64,000 nt of DNA from Lepidodermella squamata (taxonomy: Eukaryota > Animalia > Gastrotricha), in contig JBLDXI010000025.1 in assembly GCA_047495785.1 (NCBI GenBank), positions 1,984,001-2,048,000 on the forward strand. Reading direction: 5' to 3'. The notes below the pieces were generated by a model. That model worked only from the letters and a program-made list of their open reading frames with translations. It ran no database searches and was not told the origin of the DNA. This document shows, piece after piece, positions 324-40,010 of this stretch. The position numbers and the translations under genes are program-made. Within the stretch, counting starts at the first letter, position 1. Each line of letters starts with the position of its first letter.

Positions 324-538
324 TTCAGGGCTGCGTGGTTTTACCTTGAAGTTGCACTAAAATGAGGTGTTAACATGAGTTCCTGGCCACCATGTTTACG
401 CAAGCCTGGACTAACTCAGTGGTGTCAACTCAAAGTCAACAAGGAGTAAAGTAGGTGCGAGCTGTTTTCTAATGCTCAGACCTTTATTTATTTTTCTCTC
501 AAAAGAAAAAAACACCGGGAATTCAGCGACTGTCTAAC

Positions 539-1894: not shown

Positions 1895-1951
1895 TTTAAG
1901 GACCTACAAATGTTCAAAAGAACATTCCATTCAAATGATTTTTGAGGTAGT

Positions 1952-3301: not shown

Positions 3302-3487
3302 GTTCGCTGGCTTACATATATGAACAGATTTTAATGCAATATATCAAGAGAATTCGTGTTCAGCTCAGACCTCAACTCGTTACTAATAAGATGCCCTGGT
3401 AATAACGTGACTCAGTAATAACTTTTATTATCCCTTTGAGTGGATAGTAATACAATCGGCGTATACGAATTTATGAACGGATGCTTC

Positions 3488-4055
3488 TGTTGGGGCCGGA
3501 GCCCGATTTCGGTCCGCACGTATTCAGGCAGGCCCGTATATGCAGTCGGGTAACGGCGCTCTGCCACTCCGCCCTCAGACCGTTCTAAAAAAAGCCCGTA
3601 TGCGACATTTTCTGCAAATATTATGAATTTGGACGAATCTTCCTTCACTGCCCACGAGGTGTTAACCTAAGCACGGCAGAGAACAATGGGGATTAGTGCT
3701 ATTGTTGAGCGCTCGTGCGCGCCGCAATTAGGCCGCCGGGCATGGGCTGTCCTGGTTTGGACCTCGATAACCGCGTCTGTTATCATCGCTCGCCCAAGCA
3801 CCAAGCCCGGTGGTGGCAAGCGCGCACAACAACACACTGGCCTATTGTTCTCTGCACCGCTCTCGGTTTTACACCTGCGCTTGCCCGAGTCCGCTCATGC
3901 GGTATTTTTTGTTTGAATTCATTCGATTTATCATAAACATTGCGTACGGGCAGTATTTGAAGCGATCCGAGGGCGGACAGGCAAACCACTGCTTCTCGGT
4001 CAGGTTCGGGAATGACAGAGTACGAACGGACACATTTCGGTCTCCGGCCCCAACA
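3488..4055. mobile_element. 568-bp non-autonomous element with terminal inverted repeats, TGT...ACA ends and a 4-bp TSD (Ginger-like)
   Basis: Starts TGTTGGGGCCGGAG and ends CTCCGGCCCCAACA (14-bp perfect inverted repeat, imperfect for about 140 bp). Flanked on both sides by CTTC. GC-richer than its flanks; no transposase ORF. Confidence 0.85.
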
Positions 4056-18100: not shown

Positions 18101-21100
18101 TCTTTACTCTTGTTATGAATGAAGGCCGGCACGAAAACGCGGAATTCGACGGGTTTCGACACGTTTCCGGCTGAATTTGACACGTAGCACGTATAGTTGC
18201 CAGAGTCTTTGACCTGGGGCGATAGGAACTCCATCGAGCCGGAGATGAGTTGGTTGACATCGATGCCGTTTGGCAGCACGACCTTGCCTTCTTTCGTCCA
18301 AGTTACGTTGGGCTGGGGTAGGCCGATCACGTCGCACGGCAAGATAGCTTTCGAGCCAGTCACGGTCGTTATCATGCTAGGACCTTCCTTAATGCTCGGA
18401 GGGACTGAAAAAAAAGAAAATAAGTTAGTTAGTTAGAATTAAGACTAATAAAGTCTCGATTTAATTTTCAAAATTTTCAGTTGAACCTGTAAATTTTTCA
18501 ATATTTTCAAAATTCGAAATTTTCAAAAATTGCCAATGATTTTCTGTCATTTTTCGAAATTTTCTTGATTTTCGAGTTCAAATTTTATAAATGTCGAATT
18601 AATCCAGGACCTCAGTTAGAATAAAGTCTATTTTTTTAATTTAACTGTTTTAATTGTTTAAAAAACTAATTAGTTTTCAATTTTCCCCTTAAAATTCCAA
18701 ATTTGCATTTTTTTAAACTTACTCCACACAGCCAAGTGAAATTCAGCCGTATTATTGCCCGCCGCATTTCTCGCCGAACAGCTATACCGACCCGAATTCA
18801 CCAACTGCGCACTGTCCAGTTTCAGCACCTGGCCATCATTCTCGAATCGCACATTCGGCGACGCCCCACCCAGCGTTACATGCATAGCCGGTCCAATGGG
18901 CTGGGCGTTGTGAAACCAGGCGATAGTCGGTGATGGTATGCCAACCGCCGCGCACGTAATTTTAGCCGGCCGGTTGATGATAACGTGCAATTTGCTGGGC
19001 GACAGGTTCGGTGCGAAGAACGGCGGGACTAGGACGGTTAGGTGGTACTCCTTCTCAGCAGACCCGGCTTCGTTCTTCGCAACACAGCGGTAACTACCAC
19101 CGTCGGGTACTTGCGCCGATGTTAACAGGATTTTACGCCCGTTTTCAGCCATTTTAACAACGTTGTTTTTCGTGGTGAGTGGGATACCGTCTTTGTACCA
19201 AACGATGTTGGGTTCGGGCTTGCCGGTAACTGGGCAGTGGATGGTAGCAGATCGGTTCACATTGACTCGAAGTTCCATTTCTCCAACGTGAATTACAGGT
19301 GGAACTGAAAAAATCAAACATTAATAAATAGTGACAGTTTTGACAAATCAAGCAGGTCAGATTGAAGCAGAAAGAAATTTCAAAAAAATTTAATTAAAAT
19401 TTCCAAAAATAGAAATTCAATTTTCAAATTTTTAAATATTCAGAAACAAGACAAATTAAATTTTTATTATTTTCAATAAATTTTCAAATCATTTTTGGAA
19501 AAAATCGTTGATTTTCGAACTTGAAAATGAGTTCAAACGTACCCAAAACTTCGACCTCGAAATTGTACTCCTCCTGACCCGCCACGTTAGTCGCCTGGCA
19601 AGTGAAAGTGCCACCGTCCTTCACCCTGACGCGTTTTATCGTCAGCCTCGTTCCATTCTGAGCAATTTCGTAATTCTCGTCAACAATTTCATCCAACGGC
19701 TGTCGATCGTGGAACCACAGCAAAAGCGGCGGCGGCGTGCCAGATGCGCGGCAATTCAGCGTCAGCGATCGATTTTCAATCACCTTATACCCGTCATCAG
19801 GCTCCATTAGCTCGAGGGTCGGCGGTAGTAAGACTTCCAAGTCGTAATTTCTCGTTATCTGACCAGCTTCGTTAGTCGCAAGGCAGGTAAAACGAGCCGA
19901 ATCTGACTCGCGAACTCGTTGAATCTCCAACTGCTGACCGTCCGGCGTCAGTTTCATGTGATCATCCACCTTAAGAGGGAACGCGTTCCTCAGCCATTTA
20001 ATCTCAGGCGGCGGCACACCGTCAGCCGGGCATTCAAGGATAACTGTCCTATTCACGACAATCCTAGGCCGGTCGACTAAATTATCGACCTGCATGTTAG
20101 GCGGGACTAGAATTCGCAGGGTGATCGAAATTTTATCGACACCAGCTTCGTTCTGCGCGATACAGGTGTAGACGCCAGCGTCTGATTCAACAGCAGTCGA
20201 CATTTCCAACTGCCGGCCACCTGACAAGATTTGATGCCGTCCCTCCGGTTTTATCGGTTCGTCGTTTTTGAACCAGCTTATAACGGGGGTCGGAATACCG
20301 ACTGCCGGGCAGTTGAGCAGGGCAACTCGGCCTTTGACGACCTTAGGCTCCAGGTCAACATTCTGAAGACTGATATTTGGTGGGACTAGGACGTCGAGGT
20401 CGAAAAGTCGTTCAGCTGTACCGGCGTCATTTGTCGCAACACAACCGTACCTCGCCGCGTCTGAAACGGAGGCTGAGGAGACTTCGAGAATTTGCCCGTC
20501 AGCTTTTTGCAGCCACCGCATGGCGAGTTTTCCGGTTTTCGGGTCAACAAATTGCGCGGCGGCCTTAGCGGCTTCGGCTGCTACAGCGGCGCCGACCTTC
20601 TCCGAGGTTGCGATTGTGAGGGCTTTCGTCAGGTCGAATGGCAGGCCGTTGCGGAACCACGCGATAGTTGGTCGCGGAATGCCGGATGCGAAACATTCGA
20701 GAGCTGTTGATCGGTTAACAACAACCTGGACCACCGTTTTATTCGCAGATCGCTCGATTCTCGGCGGTACTAAAATTAGAAAAATAATCGTAAAAAAGAG
20801 AAAACAAATGTAGTGCGCAATTATTGAAAAATCCACCTTAATAAATTTTAGCTTTTTCAATTTGTTCAATTAGCTCAATTTACTTACCTGATTTCAGCAA
20901 TTTTTTCCTGATTTGATTGAAAATATTTTTTGAAACGAAAATAATTAAAAAATTTCAAGTCGAGCTCTCGAAGTCCATAAAAAAATTAAAAAAATTTTTT
21001 TTTTCGAAAAATTTCATTAATTTTTACCTAAGACTTGAAGCTGGTAGTTGACCTCGGCGCTTCCAGCTTGATTTTCCGCTCGGCACGTGTAGAGACCCGC

Positions 21101-24100
21101 ATCGTCGACCGTAACCGCGGCAAGTTCGAGTTGCCGCCCGCTGTCAGCCATCAAACTGCGAGCACGATGCATGTTCGAAACCGTCACCGAGGGCAGCAGA
21201 ACGGCGCCATCTTTCAACCACGTGATTTTCGGCGGCGGAATACCGGTAGCCGGACAGCTGATCGAAAGCGATTTATTCACCACAACTCGCGGCTTTTTAT
21301 CAATTTCAGACGTGTCAATTGCGGCGGGAACTTGAAAATAAATTGAAAAATTATTTAAAAAAAAAACAAAAAATTTCACAAATTTTACCAAAAATGTCAA
21401 GTTCCATAGCAAGTCTATCCTGACCAGCTTTGTTAGCCACAACACATTGATAAGTTGCCGTGTCAGAAATTCGAGTATTTTTAATCTCCAGTTTTTGCCC
21501 ATCCTGCGTAAATTTGATATTCGGATCCGTCGCCTGGTCCAGCACTTCATCGTCCTTGTACCAGACAATTTCAGGCGGCGGGTGGCCAGAAGCCGGGCAT
21601 CGCAGCACAGCCGAATTATTGACAATAACCGTAACATTTTTCACAACTGCGATCGAGTCGATAACAGGCGGGACTAAGACGTCGAGTTTGAACAGCTTAA
21701 CCAGCCGACCAGCGGCGTTAGCAGCGTGACAGGCGTAAGTCGCCGAATCAGGCCGGGCGACCCGGCTGATCTTCAACCGCCGGCCGTCGCTTTCAATTCG
21801 GACTTTGGTCGTGTCAGTCGGCGGCGGTGGGACGGGCGCGACTAGGCTGGGCGCCGGGGTGACGTCGTTGTTCCAAGCCAGGGCCTGGTCGTTCTTGAAC
21901 CAGCTGATTTTCGGCGATGGGAAGCCCTCGGCGTCGCAATTGAATTCCATTGTGTTGTTCACGATGATTTCAAACATTGAAATTTCATCCGCGTTTTTGA
22001 TCGAGGGTGGTACGTAGACCTCGAGGGCGAATTCTCGCGACACAGCGCCGGCGATGTTTGTCACCTCGCAGCGGTAGGTTCCGGCTGATTGCAGTTGCGC
22101 TCGCCGGATTTGAAGCTGCTCGCTGTCCGGCGATAGGTTGAACATGATGTCGCCGGGGAAGAGCAGCGAGTTGTCTTTGTACCAGAGGATTTGCGGCTTC
22201 GGAATGCCCTCAGCTGGACAATTGATTGTGATGTCGCTTTCGATGATAACGGACATGTTCGACGGCGAAGCACGACGCTCCTTGATTGTCGGAGGAACTG
22301 AAAAATAAGGAAAATGACAAATTAGTTGAATAAACAGGAAAATCAGGGAGAATTTGATAAAATTCGGGACATTTTGGGACATTTTGGGGACATTTGCCAA
22401 CTTGAAAGAAGCTTGAAAGAAGAAAGAAATGAAACGGACAAATTTGAAATGAAATATTGCTAGCTATCATTGTTATTTCGGTAAATTTCAAGACAATTTA
22501 AGGTTTTTGAATGATAAAATCGAAATAGTAATAAATGTAAAAAATGTAAAATAAAACTCGGGTGAACAACAATTTAAAATGCGGAAAATTTTCCACCAAT
22601 TGAGTGGTCAGTTGTTTTGGCATGCGTTCAGTTTTTTTCAACTGCAGAGCCGATATCGATCAAAGTATCGGTTTTTCAAATCAGCAATTGTTTCCGAGAT
22701 CAGAAGTCTTAAAACCCAAAAGTTTGCAATTTTGGTAATTTTTCAAGAATCTGGCCTAATTTTTTCAAATTGAGCCCACTGGGGAAAACATCCACCTTTA
22801 ATCCACGATTTTATCAAAGAAATTAACAATTTACCGGGGGAAACCTCGACGGTAACTGGTTCGGTAATTTTCGGTTTTTACCTGGTTGGATCAAATTTAC
22901 TCGGATTTTTTAATTCCATTTACAAGAGACATACTTGATTACTATTCTTTTGGATTTTCAGTAAGCATTTTAGTAAGGATGTTATTATTAAATAATTTTT
23001 GAATCATGGCTAAATGATTTCAGAAATAATTTTACACACGGATTTTGCCAAGTGAAATTTTGGGAAAAATTGAAAACGATGCTTCCGAAATGTCTTGAAC
23101 CCGTTATCTAATTTGACATGTGTATATTTTACCGAAAATGTTGAGTTTGAAGGTGCGTTGCGCTTGACCGGCAATATTCGTCGCCGAACAGCTGTACTCG
23201 CCCTGATCTTCGGGTATGACCTGGCCAATAATCAACCTCTGCGTGTCCCACGAGATGTTGTACCGCGAGAAGTGCTGCAACGAGTCGAGCCGGGTGCCGA
23301 TCGGAATCTGGCTGCGATACCACGTTATCTTCGCCCGAGGCACGGCATAGACCGGGCAGTCAAATGAAACCGTTTCATTCTTAATCGCCGTTATCTCTTC
23401 AATGCCCTGGTCGGAGATGGTCATTTTCAGGAAACGAGGCGGCACGTAGACCTTCAACTCAATCTTATGCAACGCCTCACCGGCTACGTTGGTAGCCCGG
23501 CACTTGTAAACACCCGCGTCATCCGCGACCGGCTGCAAAAATTCAAGCGAACCGTCCGGCATGACTTTAATTCTCGGATCGCCCTCGAAAATTTCGTAAT
23601 CCCGCTTGAACCAACGGATTGTTGGCTTCGGCGAGCCAGTGACCGGGCAGGGTAGGGTAATCCGGCGGTTTTCAATCGCTGTCGCGTTGATCGGGGCGGA
23701 TTGAAGAATTTTCGGCGGATCGTGGACAACGAGTTGGATGTCTTTCGTATCAGCTCCGGCCGCGTTGTCTACAACACAGGTGTAGAGCCCGGCGTCGCTT
23801 AGCGAGAGTGATTTGATGACGAGAGTTCCGTTTGAAGAGACCTCCATAGCTTCGTGTTGGATGTTTATGAGCTCTTTGCCGTTTTTACGCCATGAAACAC
23901 GTGGGATTGGGATACCAGCTGCGGTACAATCGAGAGAAATTGTATTCCCCATAATCGCCACCAATTCAGAATCATTTCGAATTTGGATGAGGGGAGGAAC
24001 TGAATAAAAAATTAAAAAATAAAATAAAATAAAATAAAGAATTCAATTAATTAAAAAATTTAAATAAATTAAAAATTGGATTTCTATTTACCAAAAACAG

Positions 24101-27100
24101 CCAATGCGATGAATTTTGTCGCGTTTCCGGCTACGTTCGAAGCCGTGCATTCGTAAGACCCAGTAACGGCCGTTGAAACGTCAAAAAGAACGAGATGACC
24201 ATTCGGAAGTTGAGCGAAAGGCAAATTTGAGCCGAGAACTGGCCGTCCGTTGAATGCCCAGTTGTAGATTGGGGGCGGAATGCCAGTTGCGTCGCAGTGA
24301 AGCGTCACATTATGGCCAACAATGACCGTGTAAGCCTCCTCGCGCAAGGTCATAGAAGGCGGAACTGAAAAAAGAGAAAAAAATTGATATCAGGACTGAT
24401 CGTTTCAAGCCAAGATGGAAAAAATGTTCAATAATTTTTTTTTATTTTAGCTCAATTTTGGAATTTGAAAAAAATTTGAAAATTGAAATTAATTTTAAGT
24501 TTTCGAGACGAATCTCTCTTTGTTATTTCAAGTTAAAGAAAAATGCTTTGAATTTACCTCGAACTAACAGCCGAAGTCGTTTGCTGGCTTCACCGGCCAA
24601 ATTTTTCGCCTTGCATTCGTACCAAGCGTCATCCGACGGCGAAGCGCCGAAAATTTCCAACCCAGTCGGGCTGATGTAGTAGTGCGGGTTGCTGATGGCT
24701 AACGGCGAGCCATTCTGCATCCAAATAACGGACGGCCTAGGATGGCCAGAGACGTTGCAAGGCAGGAAGATTGAATCGCCGTGAACTACGGCGAAATCGA
24801 CGAGGTCAGAGTCGAGAATTCGCGGTGGCACTTGGACTTCGAGTACGATTGACGTGCGCGACATGCCGCCAATGTTGCGAGCCTCACAGACGTACTCGCC
24901 CAGATCGCTGAATTTCACGGATTTGAAGCGCAACAGGTGCAGATTGTCGACGCTTTCGAACTTGATGTTGTCAGTAACAAGCAAACGCTCGCCGTCTTTG
25001 TACCAAGAAATCTTTAAGAAAAATCGTTAAATTATAATTAAAAAATTAAAAATTGAACTAATTTTTCGAATTAAACCCATCGAGAGAATGTTCCATCTTT
25101 CATCCACGATTCAACCGGAGAAATCAAAAATTTACCCAGAGAACCCGGAAACCCCGATGGTAACTGGATCGATAATTTTCGGTATTTTCCCCGGTTGGAC
25201 CACATTTCTCCGAATTATTTTTAATCCCATTGGCAATTAAGATACTTGAATACTGTTCTCGTGATACTTTCAATTTTTCTAAAAAATTTCAGGCCATAAG
25301 ACGCGACTCTCATTTTAGAGATTCTGAAATTGCCAAAATTCGAAATTGAAATTAATTTAATACAATTTAATCCATTTCCCGTGGTGGAATCGGTCTTAAA
25401 CATTCTTTAATAATCGAATTTCGAAATTCTGAATTTTTTTCGAACAGTTTACGATTGCGAATAGATTAGAAACGCTAAGATTTTCAATTTTTCATAAGAA
25501 TTTTCGCTAAAGAGAAATTTAGGCAGAAATTAAAATTTATTTAATAATTAAGTTTTCCGTAATTTTACCTCAGGTTTTGGATTTCCGTAGACAAGAACGC
25601 AAGATAGCTGCGACGAACTGCCTTCAACAGCCACAATATAAGGATATCTGTTCGAAATCCTCGGTGGCATGAGACCAGTCACAGTCACCTTAAGATCGTG
25701 CTCATCGCGCCCGAATCGATTCTCAGCAACACATCGATACAAGCCTTCATCAGTCAAATTAACGTCACTGAGGGTCAAAACCGGCTCGGTTGAAACTGTG
25801 ACATTGCTCGATTGATACAACTTCGCCTCGCGACTTGTCGAAGCGCCAACGAGGCGGACCCACTGAATCTGCGGGTCAGGGCTGCCGAGGGCTGAACAAG
25901 CGATTGAAGTGTTTTGCCCAATTTCCACGCTGATTGCGCCGCTCTGGAGCAGAATTTTCGGCCGTAGACCCACCTCGAGCATGATTTTACTCTGGGCGAG
26001 GCCAACACTGTTCTTCGCCTCGCACATGTAAGGCCCGGCGTCGGGTTGGACCGAGTCTAACAAAACCAGAGTGCCGTCAGTTCGGATATTCCGCCTGCCA
26101 TCAGCTAGAACCGGCTTATCGCCTTTGAACCACGAAGTTTCGGGTGTTGGAAGGCCTTTGACCGGGCATTTCAAAATCGCTCGATCCCCAGCTGCCACGC
26201 TGATGTGGTCAGGGTGGGGTAGGATGATAGGCGCCTCCCAGTACATGAAAGACGTTGACTTCTGCGATTTGCCTGCCGAATTTTCGCCGATACATGTGTA
26301 CTCGCCAGCATCCGCTTTCGCCATTTCGTGAATTCGAAGCCACGGCCCGGATAGGGAGAATTTTTCGGAATCGGCTATCTTCTTACCGCCGCGGTACCAG
26401 TGAACTTTCGGCAACGGATAGCCGGTTGCTTCGCATTTTAACGTGGCATGGTCACCCTGGACAAATGTCTCCTTGTCAGTCGTGATTTGAACCTCAGGAG
26501 CGCCTTAAAGCCCAGAATAAAAGTTAAAAATTAATTTAAAAAATTCAATTCGACTTACGATGAACTGCGACATGGACGGCTTTTTGCCGGGTTCCGCCCT
26601 CATTTTCCGCTTTACAAATGAAATCGCCTTCGTCGCTCAGGTAAACGTCCCTGGAAAAAAAAGAAAAATGTTTAGTAAATTCTTCACTGAGAAACGAAAA
26701 ATCTAGTATCATCCCTAAATTAATTCGGATCGCTTTCGTGCTTTTTAAGAATTTTTTAATTTTTTTGAAGAAATCAGCTCAGATTGGCAAAATTTCTTCT
26801 CTGATCTTATTAAAATTAAGATGGATCTGTCTCACGAAAAATCGCGTAACTGACTTGATGATAAGAGTTCCATTGCCGAGTACTGTGAATCGGCCCTCGG
26901 TTTTCACCGGGGTGCCGTATTTATCGAGCCAGCTGACGTTGACGAATGACGAAACACTTTCGACCAAGCAGTTAATTTGAAGAGTCTGGCCTGGCGTTGC
27001 AGTCGCGTTAGATTCAACGATAATTTCAGGCGGAGGATCTGAAAATAAAATTAGGAAAATTGTTATGAAAAATTTCAAAGGACATACCAACGATTTCGAG

Positions 27101-28926
27101 GTAAGTTGAAGAGGCTGAATAGCCGGCCGAATTACTCGCATTGCACGTGTAAACACCCTCGTGAAGGCTATTCGGACTCTCGATTCGATAAGTCACATTG
27201 GTCGAGTGCCTAAAATTCAATCAATATCTCAGTTTTGAAAAATTGAACAAGAGAAATTCATACTGGAATTGCTGAGCTGGCCCTAGGGCATGGGTGTCTT
27301 TGATCCAGCGAACACTGAACGGAACCAGCGAGTAAATTTGACAATTGATGACGATTATTTCATTCTCAACAGTCGCTCGAATCGATGGAATCATGAAAGT
27401 AATAGGTTTTACTGCCCGTTCAGCACTGATCGCAGTCTGAGTCGTTCGCCTGAATTCAAAGCCATGCGGATCAGTTCCAACAACCTGAAAAAATGAGATA
27501 AAAAATCATGAAATTCATCAAAAAATAATAAAACAAAAATCCGCCTTAATTAAAAAGGCTCCGAAAATTCTCATTAATATTAACAATGCGTTTTTCTAAA
27601 ATTTACCCGCAGATAGAAAAAATCGATATCAGGAACAGTCAAAGATGCGTTGTAAAGAGTCCGGCTGTTTCCGATCGGATGAAGCGGTGTTTCAAGTTGA
27701 ACCTGTCCGACCAAATCCACGAATTCCAGTGTCCTCGCCAGTCCCGGCGCAATCGATTCCGTCAAATTAATCAACGCGTGCATGGGTACGCCGGCAACCG
27801 GGCGGCGGACAGCCACCGAAAATTCAGCGGTCGGCATTTTTGAGAAACCGTACACGAAATTAAGCGATGACAGGCCGGTAATACGAACGGTATGCGGCTT
27901 ATCCGAAACGACCTGGATCTTCCAAATACCAGGCTCTGGTCGGTAGTAATTCGCGACGAACACGTTATCGAGACTCAGCAAGACATTCAACCCATTTTTC
28001 ACACCGATTGTTTTACCCTGAGGGTTTTTTATTCCTAATTTCGCTCCTCCACCACTCAGAGATACGGTAATTTCTTGCAGTTTTGAATCAATCGGTAATG
28101 AGTACACATTTTTATGTCGTTTCGGGTCTGTGTCAACTGAAACTAGGTTAACTTTTCGTGTTTGAATCGCGACGCGGACGAAATTTAGCACTTGGTTGAC
28201 CTCAGATTTTCTCAGGAGAAAAACTTGACCAGACGAGGTGGCTGCGATTTTTTCAAAGGCCTTGAAACCCGGGTGATTTGTGTCATTACAATCTCCGGTC
28301 ATTACGAACACGACCTGGGACTGTTTTTGTTGAATCAGCGATAAAACCGAGTCGGTGAGGTAGTAATCTTTCGCCCTGGCATCTGTGAAGACGTAGATGA
28401 AGGAGAAGGGCAGCGAGACTTCCAGGGCTAGTTTTATCGCAGTGATAGCCATTTCCGGGCAATCGCCGCCGCCCTGAACGTACAAATCACGCAGATGCTT
28501 GTGAAATTTGTTCGGGTCGGTCGTTTGAAGTACGGGGCCGACGTCTGGGTCATGAAACGGCACGAGCACGTAATTAGCGAGCGGCTTCTCGCGTCGCGCC
28601 AGGGTCGTCGCGAGAATTTTAGCCGCACCTTCAATAACCTGAACTAGGTCATCGTACATCGAACCGGTTACGTCGAACACGAACGACAACGACGCTGCGC
28701 CTGATTCGCTGGCGGCTAGGGTCGATGCGGAGTCGACGTCGCTGACAATGGGCGGTGAAGAATGCACGGCGGCACCTTGGCCAGCGATTTGAATAACGGC
28801 CTGTTGAGAGATGGCCTTTTCGATTGGATCATCGCCTGGGTCGTTTGCCGATGTCTCCGCACAGGCGACAAACGACACGGCAAAAGCGAGATAAAATAAA
28901 CGAAATATTAAGGCGAACATGTTCAT
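12177..28926 (-). CDS. HMCN1: Hemicentin (fibulin-6 type), multi-exon
   Basis: Signal peptide; VWA domain FVFDVTGSMYDDL..GGGDCPEM; about 28 I-set Ig domains (DxGxYxC motifs); 6 TSP1 repeats (WSxWSxCSxSCG); G2F/nidogen region; 7 D[VILT]DEC cbEGF; fibulin-type C-terminus ending ISEYPF. Confidence 0.96.
14300..14405 (+). repeat. Dispersed intronic repeat, copy 1
   Basis: AATTTACCGG..GGTAACTGGTTCGGTAATTTTCGGTATTTT core shared with copies near 22830, 25130 and (inverted) 32570-32640. Confidence 0.75.
22800..22922 (+). repeat. Dispersed intronic repeat, copy 2
   Basis: ATCCACGATT..AATTTACC..GGTAACTGGTTCGGTAATTTTCGG. Confidence 0.75.
25100..25320 (+). repeat. Dispersed intronic repeat, copy 3
   Basis: CATCCACGATT..AATTTACC..GATGGTAACTGGATCGATAATTTTCGGTATTTT..CTCTCATTTTA. 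Confidence 0.75.
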
Positions 28927-31422
28927 GACATGCTTCTAACGCCTTAAACTAAACACAATAAAAGTAACATTTGATCAGTTTTAGAGAAACAGAAATTCTA
29001 AAATTGTACGCGCAAAATGTTTACCTAAAAAGTCCTCCTTAAAATAATTAGCAATTTTTGCGCGTTCATAAATTTAAATTGCGTGCTCACACGTAATATT
29101 CTAATATTTCGAATATTCATGGCTTGAGAGGAATGAAAAAATACATAAAATTCACGTCGAAATACCGCTCAAGTATGAAAGCGTTAATAGTATAAACGAA
29201 TAATCCGAATTTTGAAACGAAGACGTTAGTTTACGTGACATTGAGGAGTAAAAGGCTCGGAAAATCAGTCAGTCAGCTAGGCGCCTAATGTGTTTAGTCT
29301 GGATTGATGATGGTGTGGAACGAGTGAGATGGGATTACGGGCTTGTCCGTTCGCTCTCCGCCGCACTGTCTTTTGCGTAACAACCGGGCGCCGAGGGAAG
29401 GGAGAGGGCGCCGGAAGGAGAGGTTCCGCACGGTCGGACTCGCTGCTCAGTGCCCATCAAGATAACCGCGGGTCGGCCCTTGCTACGTATAACAGCTGCG
29501 TGCGATGATGATGACTTTGACTTGTTCGCTAACTAGCGAGTTGTGCGCCCACTCTCCGGCTAAAAATAATAAATAGCAATAATCTGTTTTACAGCCGTGC
29601 CTATTACCCTTTTGGCCTTGAGTGTGTGCGCGCAATAATAATTTTGAAGCGCGTGCGCGCAAAGGCCGGGGCGCACTAATTACCTCCTGATGCGCGCGGG
29701 ATACTCGATACAATACGCGCCCGGGAAATAAACCGGTGTTACATAACACCGGCAGTGTCCGTTAAAAACGGAGCTAAAAACGCTTTGAAAATCGATCCCC
29801 CTACAAACCTCACGTTATAATAATGATAACACAATAACAAATGTGATGATGAACGAGCGCGTATAAAATCATCGGCAATTTGGCTCGGTGATATTGATTG
29901 ATAGGCGATTCTCGGAGTAGTGGGCCGTCAAATAACAACAGCGATTGCTAATGATAACAAACAACCGCGGAGGCGCTGCGCTATCATCACTGAGCCCACG
30001 CGTAACGGTCGTTTTTACTGTTGTTTCGTTGATGGAGAGCCGAAAGAATTGGTAAACAAACAAGGGAAAAGGTTTTAGCACACCCTGAAACCGAGCTGCT
30101 GAAATACAGGTAACAGGAGATAGCGAGTTAATGAATTGGAAAATACGATTAAATTTTGTAAAATAGGTACCTATCATAATTCTGACTTCTTTTCAATCAC
30201 ACAACAATGATTTGTCATTTTTCAATTTTTCAATTAAAAAATACACAAATTTCAGATTAAAAATGAAAGAAAATTGAATAAAACTTTGAATTTTTTATAT
30301 TTTCTAACACACGTGAAACACTTTCGGATTTTCTTATCTGGATTAGTTATTTTTCCTTTTTTCTTTATTTTTTACAAAATAATCATTGAAAATTGCTGTT
30401 TTTATTGTTGTAATCCGAGTAAAATGAATCTGAAGCTGAACGTGATTCGCGATTAGAGATTTGTAAACAGTGATATTTACCCAAGGGCCAAATCATGTTT
30501 TTTCTTCACATCACAACATCCAAAATGGTAAAATGTGTTGATCGGTATAGCAGCAGAGGTGTGTTATCAGCACATGGGAGATCGATCGTTGAGCGCGATG
30601 ATAACAATTCGAAAATCACACCTCTCACGCGGGTGCGTGCGCGTCTTTTATTGCGCGCGCGCGCGCGTGACCTACAAACATAAAAATTGGCGCCAAAGAC
30701 GCGGCGCGCTGTTGCAGCAGTGTATAAGACGAAAAACGATGAATTGAAACGAACGAAAACGATATGAAGGCTGTTTTATGGCCATGTCTGCAGCACCACC
30801 TGTGATTATCAACCGGCGACACACCTGATGCGGCGCCTATGATGGCAAAATGTAGCCGAATTATACAAGACACTGATATACCTAAACCTAATTTGCCGAT
30901 TTTCTAGAACACTCCAGTCACTATAAGTTAGATTGTTCCTATTTGAGGCCAGTTTTTCATTACAAGTGCATAATATTTCACCCATAACGGCCTATTTTTT
31001 CTCCTCAGCAGGAAATAATAGAAAGAATTTGGACTAATATTTTGAGATTTTCTTCGAGAAAATTACGACTCCAAAGCTTTTCTTCAGATTTTTCAGATTT
31101 TCTGTCATTTTCATGCATCACTGAATGTCTCATCCAAGAAACGAGTCTAAAAGACTGTTTACTTGAACCTAAAAGTCATTCATGTAACACCCATTGTATT
31201 ATTTTCATTACAGAGTAAACAATGACTTATTAGCCAGAAAATAGCCGCATTATTAGGAAACTCTTTTACATGGCAACCGTCGCCCAAGTCACTTTTATTA
31301 AATAAAGACGCGTGTCAAGGAGGCGTAACCACAGTCACGTGCTGCCACGCCTTAAGCACTAGTCTGGTAATTTTTAAATTTTCAAAAATTTATAGGCAAA
31401 TTTTATTACTAAAATAAGAAAA

Positions 31423-33318
31423 ATGGCGTCGAATTACTGCGAATTGGTGTTGTTTTACCTGGTAATCGCGCCGACATTGTTGATTTTAACCGCGCAACAT
31501 TTCAGCCTAATTTTCGTCGACTGTTCCTCGATCAACCATCAACAGCCCTACCCGTCGCTGTTCAGCCTCGACGCCGGCGAAGAGCGCGACCACGTAACAG
31601 CGACACTAACCCACAATAAGCAAGCGGAAATCGACGACCAAGCGCGGCGGAAGGATGAGAATACCGTTGAAAATTTGTTCACAGCCTACTTAACCCAGGC
31701 TATCGGGCGTAATTTAAGCCACGAAATTCGGCAATTTTTACACGAAAATCCCCTACCGCCTATTGATGATCTCGATGAGCGGGGTAATGTCATAGCTGGG
31801 TCGCCACGGTTGGATGAGCACGACGAAGACGGCGATGATTTCGACTACGACAACGACCGGAGCGGGGAGGAGACCCCGTTATTACTAACTCGCGGGTCGC
31901 TTCACCACCGTCAACGGCGTTATATCATCCGCGAGCCGCAGGAGTTGAATTCGATTTTACAGGAAATCAGCGCTGCTCGTAATTTGACGGCTCTTTCGAA
32001 GCAGATGAGTCGCCTGGTGAATCACTTTTGGTACGGCGAGTGGTGCGGTATGGGCTGGTCGAAAATTAACGATACCGTTTCGGACTCGCAGTGTTGCAAA
32101 TGCCGCGGCGGCGTCAAGTCGCCGAATGTTGACACTACGTTGATTCGAAACACCGCCAACGACTGCATGTAAGTTGAAAAAATGAGAGAATTTTTCGGGA
32201 AACGATTCAGCTATTTTGAGAAGTTTAAAGCATTTTTTCGGGATTTTCTTGATTCACAAATAATTCCGAGAAAATTGATTTTGTGCAGCGTGTCCCATAA
32301 TTTTACGCAAGCAAAGAAAATACAGGGTGGCCGAAAAATTCCGCAGAGCGGGAATTCGCTGCGCATCAATTTAATGAGGAGTTTTAAGAAGTTGAAGAAG
32401 TTGTTCAAGCTCTGCGGAATTTTTTGGCCACCCTGTACACGGAAAAGGGTTTAGAAGCTTTAAAATGAGAGACGCAGTGACATCTCATGGCCAGAAAAAT
32501 CACGAGAAAAATAATCATGTATGTTACTTGTTAATGAGATTGAAAAAGTCCTGAGAAATTTGGTCAAACCGGGTAAAATACCGAAAATCCCAAGCCAGTT
32601 ACCATCGGGGTTTTCAGGGTTTTCTCCGGTAAATTTGTAATTTCTTCGGTAAAATCGTGGATGAAGGAAGAGAGATGGGCTTAATTTAAAAAATGTGTGT
32701 TAATTGCTAAAAAAAATAAAAAATTCCAAATGATTGCGCAACTTAACTAAAAAATTAAATTAAGTTATTTAATTTGATTTTGTCTTTAAAAATAGAAAAT
32801 GTGGTGCGCATCCTATCGATCCAGTTGACACGAGCTGCATGCTTCACGACATTTGCTACACCTGTACCCAGTCACCGTAAGTTGACCTAATTTTTTACCT
32901 GAATGCTTACATTCAATTTTGGACTTTTTCGCTAAATTGAGATTTTGTTTATTAAAATTAGAATTAAGAATTAAGAATAGAAAATTTTGAATTTCAATTT
33001 AATTTGAAACCATTTCATCTGGTTAAAATGATTTTTTCCTTATTTTCTAGATTTGATTCTTGGGTAGCGAACTGTGAATGCGAGCGAATAATTTCCTACG
33101 CCGCTAAAGCTGCCGATTGTACACGGTCCGTATCCAAATTGTACCCGGAGATGAACGAGACGATGCGGTACCGGTGGTGCACCTTCTACAAGGGCGCCAT
33201 TCCGCTCTTGTTCGAAAACAAGCCATGCTATTGCCCGCGAAATGGCCAGGCCTTTGTTGCCTTCAGCTTGAAAATGTGCGACCGCGGTCATCTCCTAATA
33301 CCGGTTAAGGCGAAGTGA
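31423..33318 (+). CDS. Secreted phospholipase A2-like protein with an acidic prodomain (3 exons: 31423-32168, about 32795-32876, about 33051-33318)
   Basis: Signal peptide; furin-type site RQRR; Ca-loop-like YGEWCGMG; exon 2 gives PIDPVDTSCMLHDICY (sPLA2 DxCCxxHDxCY-like); exon 3 has CECE. Splice phases are consistent. Confidence 0.82.
32323..32435. mobile_element. 113-bp Tc1/mariner-type MITE in PLA2 intron 1
   Basis: TA|CAGGGTGGCCGAAAAATTCCGCAGAGC ... GCTCTGCGGAATTTTTTGGCCACCCTG|TA: 27-bp TIR with one mismatch, TA duplication. Confidence 0.85.
32460..32668 (-). repeat. Dispersed intronic repeat, copy 4 (inverted)
   Basis: Reverse complement of the 25100-25320 repeat (AAAATACCGAAAAT..CCAGTTACCATCGGGG..GGTAAATT..AATCGTGGATG). 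Confidence 0.72.
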
Positions 33319-33993
33319 ACAAAACAAAATTATTCGGAAAAATCAACATTTTTTACAAGTGAAATTTTTTTCTTCTTGTTGACGAATAATTTTATCATTG
33401 TACTCGCGCCTATAATTTTTTGTTCATTTTTTTCTCTTTCTCGAACGATTGCCGCATTTTTGAGCGAATCAAAAACTAACCTCGGTTACTTCTCAAAAAA
33501 CGTAATAATCATGAAAAACAAACACGCGGTGCGGAAACTTGTGAATAATCATTTTTTTCAATTTTTTTGTAACGACATTATTATATAATTTATTGCTTTA
33601 TAACACACTACTTACACTGACAACGACAATAATGATAATATATTCGATGAGTTTTAGCCATCAGGTTGTAAAATTTTGTATATTCTATTATTGTTAGATT
33701 TTTTTGAAATCGAAAGTGACAGTAAAAATTGTAAATTAGCCGCCTTTCACGTCGAAGATGAAAAAAATAAAGTCGAGATACATAAGTTGTTGCTCAATTT
33801 CACATTACGGTGTCTAAATAATACTACGTGATAAAAGGTGAAAGATCAATCATCAATATAGCTGGCAAAAAATCAGCTCAGGAAGCGGGTGTGTGATGTT
33901 CCAAGAAATAAATACCCGCCTCCTGCTCTTGCTGCTAAAAATATAACCAGAATAAGATGACTGTTTCAATCATAAGTGATTAGCATTTTCGAA

Positions 33994-36179
33994 TTAGCCG
34001 AAATCATCCAGGTCTTGAGGCGCAACTTCCGTCACGACCCGCTCGTCTAGCTTAATTGCGTTCACCTGGGCTCCGGTGCCGGCTTTCAGGGTCATTTTAC
34101 CGTTCTGTGTCTTCTGCGAACTCTGAGCTGTTCGGCGAACTCGATCAATCAAAGAAATCTATAGAATATAAATAGAATAAAAATAAGCTAAAAAATGATA
34201 AATTGCTTACCCATCGGCCGATCAGCATTAAATCGATCACAGGTTGTAAGATATCGAGGGAGTCGAGTGAGTTAGCGAAGAAAATATGCACAACACCAGG
34301 TCGGCCTTCAAAAGCGGCTAAAGAAGAAAAAAATAATGTGGAAAATGTTAATAAATGATTTTCTATAAAAAATTTGAATTATTATTGAATAAAATTAAAA
34401 ATTAAATTTTAAAATAGTTTTCAATTTTTTGAAATTTCAAAATTTTAAATTTTAAATCTGAAAATTGATTTTTCCAATTTTTCCTCAATGTCAGAGATTT
34501 TAATTCCTTTGATATGAAATTTGAAAGACAGAGTTTAGTTATTAATTTAGAGTTTCAGGGGTGCGATTATAACTTGCTTTTACCTCTAATATGCCGCACT
34601 ATAGTGTCTTTAATTGCACTAGGGTCCAGGCCACCCTCGTGATCGGGAAACGACCTCTCCAGAGGTATTCCGATAAGTTTTTTCAACAAAACATCAAATT
34701 TGTTGACAACAATTAGCAGCGGCTTCATAGAAAATTGACGCAGTCGAACAAGCGAATTTTGCATGTTATCGATATTTCGCATTAGTACAGACTTGGTGAC
34801 ACCTTCTCGCGTGCTCATCGCACCGTGCTGTGATACGTCATATACGTATAGTATGCAATCGAACGCCTCAGGCTGATTAAGCAGATAGCGCTTCCCTGTA
34901 AGATCACCAGTGATTTCCATCATCCTGTAAAAAAATCCAAACTTAAGCGTCCCTGGTTACCGTGGTTGCTAAGGACTTACACTAGCGAGTGCTTCGATGG
35001 TAGGCTGATTTCAACGGCTTGCAGGCTCTTCTCGTGACCCTGCTGGCTGTTGGCCATCGCGAGAAGTTGCTTCTGAGCAACACTTCCCAACGAATTCTTC
35101 GAATCAGTCCCGCCCATATAGTCAATATGCATGAGATCAGCCATTGACGGCATGTAATCGTCGGCTAAAATTCGCTTGATGTGCGAAATGGCACTGGAAA
35201 CAAATTAATGATTGAAAAATCATGAATTAAATTGGCTTACTAATCAAAGGTCGATGAGTAGATTTTCCGTTGTAAATTGTTGGTTTCAATGAAGTTTTGA
35301 ACCTCGTAATCGTAGATGAAGTTGCCAATTGCGCCGATGAGTTCGTCATTCGGGACAATCGTTCCATTCAACATCGAACAGTTGGCAAGAGCCCGTTGTA
35401 GCAGCTCCATCATCTCGGTGTTTTGGATCCGGCAATTCAGGCGATGAATTTCTCGCCAAAGTAGCTTCACTGAGTCGAAGACGCATAGACGCATCAGAGC
35501 TCGAGCTGTGTGAAGTTCTTCAGGTGAAAAACGGTACCCGCAACATATTCGAGCTTGTTTGATCAGCGTAGTCTTGCCAGATCCGCGGGGGCCAACGACC
35601 AGGACACATACGACTTTTTTATGCTTCTGGGCGCCCTGGGCGTTGGTTCCAGCTTGGCTCCCAGGCACTCGTCGACCGCCACCACCTGGTCCGTCATCTC
35701 CGAACCGTTTCGACGCACCGCCTCGTCCTGTTCCTCCGATGACGACAGGCCCGCTACTGCCTCCCCCTGGGTTGGGGCTCACCGACCGGGAGATTCCAGG
35801 TGACCCGGGCGTGAGGCCCCTCTTATCGCCCAGGTTCTGCATGGCCGTAGCGGGCGCGCTGGCAGTAGACGCCGGCATAGGTGAAACCGCGGACGCAGAT
35901 GGCATTACTGCCGCGGAGTATTTTCTTCTGGACGTTTGTGACTGCAAAACGAAAGCGGAGCTGTTTGAAGAATGTTAGCTGCGCTTGTTCGATGCTGCTG
36001 CTAAAGTACAATGATGATGTATCAACGCTCGGTTTTCAGTGCGCGCTCATTCGCAGAGACACAGGAAAAGCAAAAACACGCGTCTGCTATGTGTTATCTC
36101 ACTCAAATTGCTTCCGCAGCACCTCAACCTGGGCGCTATACGGCATGATCAGTACACGCGCATGGGTGTCGAATTTCAT
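33994..36179 (-). CDS. Highly divergent heterotrimeric G-protein alpha-like protein (probable pseudo-GTPase)
   Basis: VLVVGPRGSGKTTLIKQARI..GYRFSPEE resembles the G-alpha P-loop and alpha1; a helical domain follows; RILADDYMPSMAD, CILYVYDVS and LLIVVNKFD (G4). A small first exon (ATG 36179 or 36146) splices in frame at about 35941. Stop at 33994. Confidence 0.8.
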
Positions 36180-36477
36180 CAATTTTTCAAACACGATCCT
36201 TTCATCATCAGCTCTCTGCCTCGTTGAGGAAAAAGTTTGTTAATTTGAACGCCGTTAGGCTGATTAGCCATTCACGTGTAATGAATTCCTTCACACGCGT
36301 CATCAATCGATTCACCGATAAATTGAACGGTTTGCATACAAAACGGTGCTGTGTTATTGACGACATGATGAACAAAAGAAAACATCGATCCAAGGTGCAA
36401 AAGGTGTTTGCAAAATAACAACGAAGGAGCTTATCCCTCATACGATAATTTTTTTTTGGCGAGAAAGTCTAAAAAAA

Positions 36478-39130
36478 ATGGCGGCTAAACGCATGCGAAC
36501 AGCCATCCACAAGTTCATGTCAGATCAGATCGCTGATCTGCGGGACAAAATGCGGGAGCTGTTCAACGAACAGGAGTACGATCCTAATCAACTTGGTGAG
36601 ATTCCCATTCTCTGAAAAAGACCCAAACTCACACTGAACCTTTTAGATTTTGATGGCAACACGTATTTGCACCATGTTTTGAGGTTGGAAGCTCACGTTG
36701 AGGACGATAGCATAACTGTACCTTTGGTTTATGTCCTTGGTAATGCTGGCATCGATCCAACGATTACAAATGACCAAGGAGAGGCTCCCCTTCATATGGC
36801 TGTTCAAATGAAGTGTACACCCATAATGATAAACGCCCTACTCAAAATCGGGGCTGACCCGCTTCAACCTAACAACAAAGGTATCACTCCCCTGAAAATG
36901 GCTCTGAGGGGAGACGATGAGAGTTACTTACTGCTGTTCATCAACCGACCTGGCCTATTCCAAGCAGCAAAGCAAGGCGATGTTAGAAAAGTCGAGTATC
37001 TCATGGATTGTTTCTACCGACCCGACCCTGTGTGTTTCGGGGTGAAGTTATCCGACGTCATTCAAGACGACCCTGATACCCAGTTCGCAATTTCGAACAA
37101 AGATACGAAATCCCTGTTTTTCCACGCCTGTATGGCTGGAGATGCTGTCAACGCCCGCGAGTATTTTTACCGCTTGAAAGATGTGAGACTCGAGGATATT
37201 CAGGATCCGATGTTTTTCGACAATGACGGCCAGTTGCCAATGTCGATGATGGGCTACGCACTCCTGCTTAACCTACCAGAGATCGCAACTATGCTGCTCG
37301 AACTCGGCGGAGATATCAATAAGAAAATAGAGATAAATGAAACAACGAAGGTTCCCCTTTACTGGTACTGTATGACCAATACCAAAAAGATTGAGTATGG
37401 CAGTGCATATTCAGTCGTTTTGCAAAAGGCTGATCTCGCCTCTCTGAGAAAGGACGCTGCCGGGGTCCTTTACATGGCCTGGCAAAGAAAATGGCCACTG
37501 GATGTTGTTCAAACCTTCGCAAAGGCTAAAGGCTTCATCTCACGGCGAAATCTGTTCGGTCATACTGCTCGCGATTTGATCCTAATCAAATCGATCACAG
37601 CTCGCATGGTGACATGGCGCGAAGAGCTATATTTCATCGATCGACATGTTCGAGAAATGTTGGAGGAATACGACTATCCGAAGATAGAAGAGCTGATTCT
37701 GAGCGGTTACGAGCAAGTCCCTCGAGTTCCTATCCAGCTACCCGAGCCTCTCGGTGCAAAGCCAACTGTTGGTGAGCGAAATCGTATGGAGAACGCGAAG
37801 CGTTTGAAGGAACTCATGGAATCCTATGCCGAAATCAAAAAGGCCTCTCGAATTATGTTCTCAAGCATTGAGACTGGTAACATGCCAGATTTCAGGGAGG
37901 CCCTAACCTCGCGGGCTGTTCAGGTTACGGACAAAGCTGCTCGAAACATGTTGCATCTGGCAGTCATTTTTGATCGCCGGGTCCTGGCTAAATTCTTGAT
38001 TGATAAATACCCTGACCTTGCAACAAAGAAGGATATTGTAAGCCATTTAACAAATGCTTTTTCTGTAATCAGTTTGGGTTGATTTCAGTTTGGGAGGACA
38101 CCGCTGCATTACGCCGCTGCATTGGATGAGTCTTCAGAACTTGAAGAGCAGTTGAAAAACAAGGGAGCTAGTTATAATGAAGTCGATGTGGTAAGATTCC
38201 TAAACCAAAATTCGAACTGCTAAACTAAGCAATTTCCTTGCTCATTCTTAGTTTGAAAAAAAGCCTATGGAATATGACAATGAAGCTGGTTTGGCAATGG
38301 TCGAAGACGAACGCGGGAAACTTTACGGTGCAGACGCTTATTGCTTGGAGATGTACGTTAGATTCGAAGAAGCCATCAAAAAGGGCCAGTTCGATTTGGT
38401 TCAAAAGCTGCACGCTGAGTTGAACGGAATCCCTATTGAAGTCATCACTCGAGACATGTACAGCCCGCCGCAGTATACGCCCCCTCGTGAAATTGTGTTT
38501 ATCGCTGTCGATGAAGATAAAGAACCTATTGCGATTTGGCTGGTTAAAAACGGAGCCGCCTGGGATGTTGTTAGCTTTGTGAGTATCTTTAAATTGTTTT
38601 ACCACAAATTTTACAGCTTTTTATTTCAGTTGGTAACCAGAAAGACCCCTAAACCGATCAATCTCTACACCGCAGCTTCATTGAAAGGAATGGAACAGTT
38701 GAAGAAGCTTATCATGCAAAAAGAGCAGGATTTCAAGCATAAGAAGGCCGAAGAAATGGCTAAAGCCGAAGAAGAACGTTTGAAAGATGTCGAGCGGCAA
38801 ATGAAGTACGAGGAGAAGATGATCAGAGAGGGAATGCTTGACGATGAAATCGTCGACGGTAACTTTTATCTTCCACGCATTTTTATCAATCCTAATCTCC
38901 CTGTATTAGATTTGAATGACGAAGCTCCTGATGGTTGGGATGAGGATGGGAAAGGTGAACCCGCCAAACATGCTGATGAATTAGCGATGGAAGAGGGCCG
39001 AGCCCAGCAACAGCAGCAGCAACAGCAACTTCTTATGCAACAGCAGTATCAACAATATCTGAATCAAGGGCACGTTAAGCCTCAAACTGGAACAAACCAA
39101 GGAAACACCAAAGGCTGCTCCCTGATGTGA
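36478..39130 (+). CDS. Ankyrin-repeat protein with a charged helical region, poly-Q tract and C-terminal CaaX (CSLM)
   Basis: Ankyrin motifs GNTYLHH, GEAPLHMA, GITPLKMA, RNMLHLA and GRTPLHYAA. Short GT-AG introns. Ends TKGCSLM-stop. Confidence 0.85.
39005..39056 (+). repeat. CAG/CAA coding repeat (poly-Gln)
   Basis: cagcaacagcagcagcaacagcaa... encodes QQQQQQQQLLMQQQYQQ. Confidence 0.75.
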
Positions 39131-40010
39131 AAGGACTATTTTAATATTGCACGCTTGACGATTTGTTTGAACATCAGATTTTGTTTCTTTTGCAAATGAC
39201 TTTACAATTTTCATCTCAACTCGGTAATTTCCGTTCAGAAGGAAATAAATTCTATGTTAACTGAGGTTTCCATATTGGTAAATCAACACAGGTGGTATGA
39301 TACTCGCAAATTAGAGAGTTAGGTACAATTATTTCTTATGCACTGGAGTGCTGTTCATTGCACACTGCATTAAATTTAGACTGATGTAGGAATTATCATG
39401 GTTATAGTTACTGTCTGGACACTTCATAAGACTGACGCAAAATGCTTACAGAATGGCGGGATAACCAAATTTGATACGAAAGAAGGTTGATTTTGTTGTC
39501 CCGGCTCATTTAATTAGTAAGTTGCAGTTGACTGACAGTACGGGGATTGAATGGAGAAATCAACTTTGACCTAATATGCTGACATTTTGAAATAGCCCTA
39601 ATGCTGTTAAATGCCTGTGCTGCTCTTTAGCGCAAGGAGGAAAATCGATCTATCTTGAATAACTTGAATAAGCTCCGGATGCAAAAGTCTGTCTCAGAAT
39701 ATAATAAACTGAAAGCTGATTATTCCATTATTTTATTATTCAACAGGCCTTGTCAACAGGGTCAGCTTTATTCGCAAATTTATCGGGAAGAAAAAATACC
39801 AAAACATGATTTGTCGTTAATAAAAGGTTCATAGAAGTCGGCCAGAATCGGGGCAAGGGCGAATTTTTTTGGCAACTCTCGGAATAATTGCCGCGGTTGA
39901 CTAGGCCTGGATTCAAAGCTTCTGAGTACTTATGTGAACTGAATAGGTTATCTTCGAGGTAATCAAACTTCCATCTTATATCGGCACAGGCGAAGTAAAA
40001 AAATTGCGCG

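Follow-up and report, generated by a model that had tools for sequence, protein, structure and literature searches.

A divergent G-alpha paralogue of the gastrotrich Lepidodermella squamata with the probable character of a non-switching pseudoGTPase

A G-alpha-like gene was identified on the minus strand of a 64,000-nucleotide (nt) stretch of the Lepidodermella squamata genome (GenBank assembly GCA_047495785.1, contig JBLDXI010000025.1, positions 1,984,001 to 2,048,000 of the forward strand), hereafter called the window. The coding sequence (33994-35905), delimited from the listing of open reading frames (ORFs) and by reading the strand, consists of five coding exons and four GT-AG introns and forms an intact frame of 1491 nt, corresponding to 496 amino acids (aa). 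The gene probably encodes a lineage-restricted, highly divergent G-alpha paralogue that is now a non-switching pseudoGTPase. Judged by its sequence, the protein is a divergent member of the G-alpha family by descent and would not be a functional heterotrimeric G-alpha by the usual definition. An orthologue of 498 aa was rebuilt from four environmental assemblies (L001-L004) of one species, which are 99.2-99.5% identical to one another, and served as the reference for conservation.

Homology to G-alpha subunits

Pfam scans were performed exon by exon, and structure models were made of two pieces, aa 90-221 of the window protein and the fused exon 3+4 of the orthologue. Exon 1 alone passed the gathering score of the G-alpha profile PF00503 (49.9 bits vs. 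48.8), with aa 92-209 matching profile positions 15-132, a span with the P-loop, alpha1, and a large part of the helical domain. A second match to this profile, against which an earlier reading made from the letters of the DNA (the sequence-only reading) had proposed to score the protein, was obtained with exon 3 (21.2 bits; E value, 1.8e-4). Exon 2 had no Pfam match, and its sole PDB profile match was a non-significant designed coiled-coil peptide and not a G-alpha; the G-alpha match would fail here because the switch I region is too divergent.

Sequence matches in the PDB, found by phmmer and by profile, were almost only G-alpha chains, all of them weak (15-27 bits). The scores were equally weak for Gi, Gq, Gs, G12/13, and fungal Gpa1, and no preference for any of these classes was seen. 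A full-length alignment with the G-alpha-type proteins retrieved in a large search extended from the P-loop to alpha4 with 23-25% identity. The AlphaFold model of aa 90-221 was helical, with a mean confidence score (pLDDT) of 76.6, and its 50 best PDB matches in Foldseek were all G-alpha chains, although these matches were weak (TM score, 0.4-0.57; E value, 0.2-1.7; none at E ≤ 0.001). The model of the orthologue's exon 3+4 (pLDDT, 69.9) likewise had G-alpha chains as all of its 50 best PDB matches, with TM scores of 0.6-0.72 and E values of about 1e-4. The helical domain is present between G1 and switch I, and the spacing from the P-loop to switch I is 136 aa. The Pfam, PDB sequence, and fold matches together indicate a genuine G-alpha-family protein with the hallmark helical-domain insertion, and the homology to G-alpha is not due to chance.

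The protein shares with the canonical metazoan G-alpha subunits (Gi/o, Gq, Gs, G12/13, and Gv) a Ras-like domain interrupted between the P-loop and switch I by a helical domain, the GxxxxGK[ST] motif, whose canonical form is GAGESGKS, NKxD followed by FPD..GG, beta6 and alpha5 in the usual order, and an intron just upstream of the G3 strand. It differs from them in that the switch I Arg and Thr, the Asp..Gly-Gln of G3, and the P-loop Gly-Glu are replaced, in an insert of about 30 aa past switch I, in the absence of a Gly2/Cys3 lipidation site and of an evident alphaN helix, and in about 46 aa past alpha5. Among the features by which a G-alpha is usually defined, the profile, the helical domain, G1, and G4 were therefore found, and G2 (RxxT), G3 (DxxGQ), lipidation with alphaN, and a free alpha5 C-terminus were not. 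A GTPase fold in which the catalytic residues are replaced, as in a pseudoGTPase, is what the protein presents.

Replacement of the catalytic and switch residues

The register of the motifs was taken from HMMER alignments for the P-loop, G3, and G4 and from a MAFFT alignment for switch I. The P-loop reads GPRGSGKT (aa 105-112; window 35570-35593). In the HMMER alignment, GTGESGKST of Gq is matched by GPRGSGKTT, so that the equivalents of G42 and E43 are Arg and Gly, respectively; since the P-loop of the orthologue is GPRSSGKT, the E43 equivalent is G/S across the two species. Switch I reads DLMHIDYMGG (aa 241-250; window 35109-35138) and was placed against what we take to be the canonical DVLRTRVKTTG and its numbering. 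A gapless alignment through the retained flanking pattern Y..RI...Y.P...D gave R178 replaced by Asp and T181 by Gly. T251, a Thr two residues past the lost switch I Thr, is conserved in the orthologue. Compared with other G-alpha proteins, the stretch from switch I to beta2 is longer by about 30 inserted residues.

The G3 motif is EITGDL (aa 296-301; window 34900-34917). Here, MFDVGGQR of transducin aligns to MMEI(S/T)GDL, which corresponds to D200 replaced by Glu, G202 by Thr or Ser, Q204 by Asp, and R205 by Leu, with G203 retained. Switch II, which follows EITGDL, is rewritten and includes a Pro. The G4 motif NKFD (aa 367-370; window 34693-34704) aligns to NKKD of transducin and to the NKxD of yeast Gpa1, and the stretch NKxD....K......FPD..GG typical of G-alpha is intact. 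The G5 region reads FANSLD (aa 420-425; window 34262-34279); an Ala follows beta6 in FFANSLD, with a register relative to Cys-Ala-Thr that is uncertain by one residue. The parts that would hold a nucleotide, i.e., the P-loop Lys and Thr, NKxD, and the putative G5 Ala, are thus retained.

Both ends of the protein are also unusual. The first 95 aa consist to 65% of Gly, Pro, Ser, Thr, and Ala, start with MPSAS without Gly2, and have no Cys, the first 99 positions being free of this residue. Reading of the N-terminal sequence revealed neither a lipidation site nor an evident alphaN helix. Ahead of the P-loop, the protein has 104 aa, presumably about 65 more than G-alpha-i1. Past alpha5, an extra, acidic tail of about 46 aa ends with VAPQDLDDF, which is conserved in the orthologue.

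The retained G1 (GPRGSGKT) and G4 (NKFD) and the altered G3 (EITGDL) and G5 (FANSLD), which the sequence-only reading had named, are all present in the spliced product, as is its DLMHIDYMGG switch I followed by an insert, estimated there at about 25-30 residues and here at about 30. Its claim that the switch I Arg and the G3 Gln are lost was borne out by the alignments, which add the change of the P-loop Gly42 to Arg and the loss of the switch I Thr. It was also right about a Gly/Pro/Ser-rich N-terminal extension without an MG start and about extra residues past alpha5; the lengths, given as about 110 and about 50 residues, are 104 aa before the P-loop and about 46 aa, respectively.

Proposed mode of action

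All of the elements that drive GTP hydrolysis and the GTP-dependent switch would be replaced in this protein (G42 to R, E43 to G/S, R178 to D, T181 to G, D200 to E, G202 to T/S, and Q204 to D), and the rewritten, Pro-containing switch II together with the insert of about 30 residues past switch I would add to the loss of switching. As a consequence, the protein may be held in a single conformation in which a nucleotide is probably a structural cofactor. Its function would lie in the binding of partners, for which its conserved surfaces and the likewise conserved acidic C-terminal tail would be used. Neither a lipid anchor nor the canonical alphaN/G-beta-gamma interface would be involved, and no receptor would couple to a free alpha5 end. 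Coupling to receptors in the canonical way is unlikely because of the C-terminal extension of about 46 aa and an N-terminus that lacks a lipidation site or evident alphaN. Similarly, G-protein-coupled receptors or canonical G-beta-gamma are unlikely partners, as switch II is rewritten, alpha5 is capped, and both an evident alphaN helix and a lipid site are missing. We infer from these features a loss of hydrolysis, receptor independence, and a scaffold role.

Published G-alpha mutants are consistent with such a state. G-alpha-i1 carrying G42R binds and hydrolyzes GTP but never reaches the active conformation, and it prefers partners of the inactive state (PMC3285607). Loss of the catalytic switch I Arg (Rcat) and of the catalytic G3 Gln (Qcat) abolishes hydrolysis in canonical G-alpha, and in the plant XLG proteins it is linked to nucleotide-independent function (10.1101/795088). 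A non-switching fold with a nucleotide as its probable structural ligand is favored because the G42R-type, Rcat, and Qcat changes are combined here while the P-loop Lys and Thr, NKxD, and the putative G5 Ala are kept.

Several points weigh against this explanation. Since two species only are available, the conservation of the motifs is indistinguishable from the 83-91% identity of the domains as a whole. An unconventional active site might be built from the P-loop Arg, the Asp that replaces the catalytic Gln, and the conserved T251, and an acidic residue at the position of the catalytic Gln need not abolish hydrolysis, as is known from Ras Q61E. In addition, a charge reversal at Rcat equivalent to the one found here makes a stable nucleotide-free G-alpha-i1, as reported in a preprint on XLG2 (10.1101/795088).

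The last point bears on the first alternative, in which the pocket has no useful affinity for GTP or GDP and the fold is purely an interaction module, i.e., a nucleotide-free (class I-type) pseudoGTPase such as Arabidopsis XLG2. Beyond the reversal of Rcat to Asp, the loss of the Mg-binding switch I Thr, the change of D200 to Glu, and a bulky Arg at G42 would all disfavor the binding of phosphate and Mg. We nevertheless consider this alternative unlikely, although it is the best of those weighed here: the P-loop Lys and Ser/Thr, NKxD, and the putative G5 Ala are kept, unlike in XLG2, and Arg at G42 alone does not empty the pocket, given that the G42R mutant of G-alpha-i1 still binds GTP and turns it over (PMC3285607).

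The second alternative is a rewired but active GTPase or switch, in which a cis arginine finger would be supplied by Arg107, the water would be oriented or activated by Asp300, and the role of the switch I Thr would pass to T251. The canonical pair of P-loop Glu and switch I Arg appears charge-swapped in the window protein (Arg107 and Asp246), and both residues, like T251, are conserved in the orthologue. GTP hydrolysis by Ras Q61E is faster than by wild-type Ras, and an Arg in the P-loop is employed by GTPases of the GBP type. However, Arg107 occupies the position of G42 and not that of E43, switch II is rewritten and contains a Pro, and we know of no G-alpha with such a rewired mechanism. 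Arg at G42 in G-alpha-i1 also blocks the active conformation and is of no help to catalysis (PMC3285607). This arrangement thus seems improbable, more so than an empty pocket.

If the non-switching reading is followed further, an animal lineage may have long preserved a natural G-alpha of the G42R/R178D/Q204D type that is soluble, independent of receptors and G-beta-gamma, and locked in one state, a proposal that we regard as quite possible, if somewhat short of probable. If true, it would be the first counterpart in an animal to the 'decoy' G-alpha proteins (XLGs) of plants, equipped with a conserved acidic docking tail and, above the nucleotide site, with a new insert of about 30 residues. 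In a bolder version, the charge-swapped pair of P-loop Arg and switch I Asp might constitute a new cis-acting catalytic arrangement.

Transcription and purifying selection

Two public sequencing runs, X1 and X2, cover the stretch. The contigs of X2 cover the introns, which identifies this run as genomic DNA. In contrast, X1 contigs skip all four introns exactly at the predicted borders (CT..AC on the plus strand), and one of them stops at 36012, followed by 22 loose letters that resemble the complement of what we take to be a template-switch adaptor for complementary DNA (cDNA). The exact skipping of introns and the adaptor-like 5' end indicate that X1 is cDNA, and the gene is therefore transcribed and spliced as modeled. 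The sequence-only reading had regarded lack of expression as a ground for giving up its interpretation; the gene is expressed.

Two sequence versions were observed at 34160-35550. They are about 5% apart at synonymous sites, and their introns differ more, with indels. Each version occurs in both the DNA run X2 and the cDNA run X1, indicating expression of both; the two may be alleles or copies of very recent origin. One low-depth X1 contig joins opposite strands at 35089/35249, which probably reflects misassembly of the minor haplotype where exons 1 and 2 meet.

Between the window protein and the orthologue, the unusual motifs are all identical apart from the variants given above. Identity is highest from beta3 to alpha5 (91%), followed by the P-loop and helical domain (83%), the segment of switch I, insert, and beta2 (81%), and the tail (70%), and falls to 37% in the N-terminal extension; by exon, it is 83% for exon 2 and 89% for exon 3. 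Synonymous sites are saturated between the two species (proportion of synonymous differences, pS, 0.84). The rate of non-synonymous change (dN) amounts to 0.13 for aa 96-496 and to 0.07 for aa 293-442, and the N-terminal extension evolves fast, with a dN of 0.60. With dN of 0.07-0.13 against saturated synonymous sites, the ratio dN/dS (dS being the synonymous rate) is far below 1.

Polymorphism gave the same picture. All 19 coding differences of the second haplotype or copy in L. squamata are synonymous, its introns carrying both substitutions and indels, and so are all 13 coding polymorphisms among the four contigs of the orthologue. Because only about 23% of sites are synonymous, 32 synonymous changes out of 32 are far beyond chance. 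The gene is under strong purifying selection. The comparison of dN and dS among orthologs that the sequence-only reading had called for, made here with one orthologue, thus rules out neutral evolution. Alternative exons that encode D.GGQ or R.R..T.G, and hence could restore the DVGGQ whose recovery would have undone that reading, were absent within 30000-40000.

These data leave virtually no room for a gene copy in decay or in neutral evolution, or for an assembly error behind the gene model, for which the extreme divergence from known G-alpha proteins and the near absence of database relatives might speak: an intact frame has been kept in both species despite saturated synonymous divergence, the polymorphisms are 32 synonymous to 0 non-synonymous, dN is low, the cDNA is exactly spliced, and the downstream synteny is kept. 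The pseudogene and mis-model readings were accordingly rejected on cDNA splicing, synonymous-only polymorphism, and low dN, in line with the earlier argument from an intact frame.

Comparison with known systems

The nearest known analogue appears to be the plant XLG1-3 group. These are likewise atypical G-alpha proteins with an N-terminal extension, and they lack Rcat, where an acidic residue is found instead, Qcat, and the glycine at G42. In XLG2, the losses further include DVGG, the G5 Ala, and the Lys of the P-loop; the window protein, in contrast, keeps the Lys and Thr, one G3 Gly, NKxD, and the putative G5 Ala. The N-terminal extension of XLG proteins is a Cys-rich domain with a nuclear localization signal; that of the window protein is Gly/Pro/Ser-rich, with no Cys in aa 1-99. 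Neither the Cys-rich domain nor the loss of the P-loop Lys that mark plant XLG membership is thus present, and no XLG was among the relatives retrieved in an exhaustive HMMER search. Since the extensions differ and a different subset of motifs is lost, the likeness looks convergent, i.e., an independent decay of the same sites. Plant XLGs function largely independently of nucleotide (10.1101/795088).

Engineered and fungal G42R mutants of G-alpha (PDB 3QI2; PMC3285607) carry Arg at the same P-loop position, and this Arg keeps the switch regions of G-alpha-i1 from the active conformation in any nucleotide state (PMC3285607). Those mutants retain R178 and Q204 and still hydrolyze GTP, whereas the Arg of the window protein is natural and conserved and is accompanied by the loss of both catalytic residues. 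Among small GTPases, the pseudoGTPases Rnd1-3 and RhoH bind GTP without hydrolyzing it. They resemble the window protein in changes at the equivalents of Ras G12 and Q61 with retained nucleotide-binding motifs; they belong to another GTPase family, have no helical domain, and, unlike the window protein, are lipid-anchored.

G-alpha subunits are among the most constrained signaling proteins of animals, and to our knowledge their catalytic Arg and Gln are near-invariant. A conserved paralogue that lacks both and carries the G42R change would suggest that the G-alpha fold can be reused in animals beyond receptor-driven GTP switching, a reuse so far documented mainly for plant XLGs. It may also help, as a natural example, to determine which surfaces of G-alpha function in the absence of a nucleotide cycle. 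The importance of the finding is limited in that the protein is known from two small invertebrate species only and its function is deduced from the primary structure.

Gene structure

The 5' untranslated region (UTR) occupies 107 nt (35906-36012) and ends where the X1 cDNA contig does. The sequence-only reading had extended the gene to 36179, but 36013-36179 lies outside the transcript as seen; likewise, the "about six exons" it counted are reduced to five coding exons and four introns by the gene model and cDNA. All of the following features are on the minus strand. Coding exon 1 (35241-35905; aa 1-222) contains the Gly/Pro/Ser-rich N-terminal region (aa 1-95), a basic patch QKHKK, beta1, the P-loop, and most of the helical domain. 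It is followed by intron 1 (35194-35240; 47 nt, GT..AG), which the X1 cDNA contig skips exactly. Coding exon 2 (34981-35193; aa 222-293) carries the degenerate switch I and the insert of about 30 aa (about 35016-35108), flanked by the end of the helical domain and by beta2, and is followed by intron 2 (34925-34980; 56 nt, GT..AG). Coding exon 3 (34584-34924; aa 293-407) encodes beta3, the degenerate G3, the altered switch II, NKFD, and the FPDxxGG stretch typical of G-alpha. Coding exon 4 (34211-34317; aa 407-442), with beta6, the G5-like FANSLD, and the start of alpha5, is separated by intron 4 (34159-34210; 52 nt, GT..AG) from coding exon 5 (33994-34158; aa 443-496 and the stop codon), which encodes the end of alpha5 and the extra tail. 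Introns 2, 3, and 4 are also skipped in the cDNA, and introns 1, 2, and 4 are kept at the same positions in the orthologue.

Intron 3 (34318-34583; 266 nt) is AT-rich with simple repeats. It is missing in the orthologue, where exons 3 and 4 are fused, and was therefore gained or lost since the species split. In the DNA run, the middle of intron 3 had 2-3 times the flanking depth and many loose ends, indicating that it holds a simple repeat common in the genome; elsewhere in the window, its sequence gave only short low-complexity matches. The 3' UTR (33570-33993, with an approximate end) is covered by a cDNA contig that runs from exon 5 past 33600, so that the transcript extends at least about 400 nt beyond the stop codon. 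An AATAAA is found near 33590-33595, and we infer cleavage near 33570. A scan of the whole window against Rfam gave no match.

Distribution

The searches for relatives used pieces of the protein as queries and covered protein libraries, outside which unannotated eukaryotic genomes lie. A word-index search with exon 1 returned one protein, P0001 (ENA), with 63% identity, whose contigs L001-L004 are those from which the orthologue was rebuilt, and a search with the exon 3+4 fragment of the orthologue returned only the environmental orthologue; the length filter of these searches with pieces leaves out full-length proteins. The 149 aa of the orthologue that are most conserved were used in an exhaustive HMMER search of 1.84 billion representative proteins, which gave five matches and no annotated animal orthologue. 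One match was the fragment of the orthologue itself, one was a spurious repeat protein (P0003), and the other three were distant G-alpha-type proteins. Profile scans of JGI metagenome contigs with exon 3 and exon 1 found nothing. From the HMMER, word-index, and JGI results, the family is known from two species only. No description of an animal G-alpha of this kind was found in the literature (including PMC5896119), the coverage of which was incomplete, so that absence is not proven.

Neighboring genes and other G-alpha-type sequences

Downstream of the G-alpha-like gene, large ORF-exons on the minus strand at 12177-28926 encode VWA_4, a hemicentin galactose-binding domain, many Ig I-set and TSP1 repeats, G2F, and Ca-binding EGF domains, and look like one giant hemicentin-like gene. 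The downstream synteny, including this adjoining gene, is conserved in the orthologue, and its VWA exon has 95% protein identity in the orthologue-bearing contigs. Upstream, an ankyrin-repeat gene (36478-39130, plus strand) lies head-to-head with the G-alpha-like gene, about 470 nt from its mRNA 5' end. A conserved module of these two genes was considered and rejected: the 2.9 kb upstream of the orthologue (L001) hold other ORFs and have no similarity to any part of the window.

Tandem intronless G-alpha-type ORFs were observed at 425-4630 of a JGI metagenome contig of 4630 nt (L005). They include one for a protein of 721 aa with two G-alpha domains, in both of which G3 is degenerate (DVGAE and EDLGA), and the second P-loop, GPRNGGKTT, is close to that of the window protein. 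These ORFs may represent another unstudied group of degenerate G-alpha proteins in a eukaryote.

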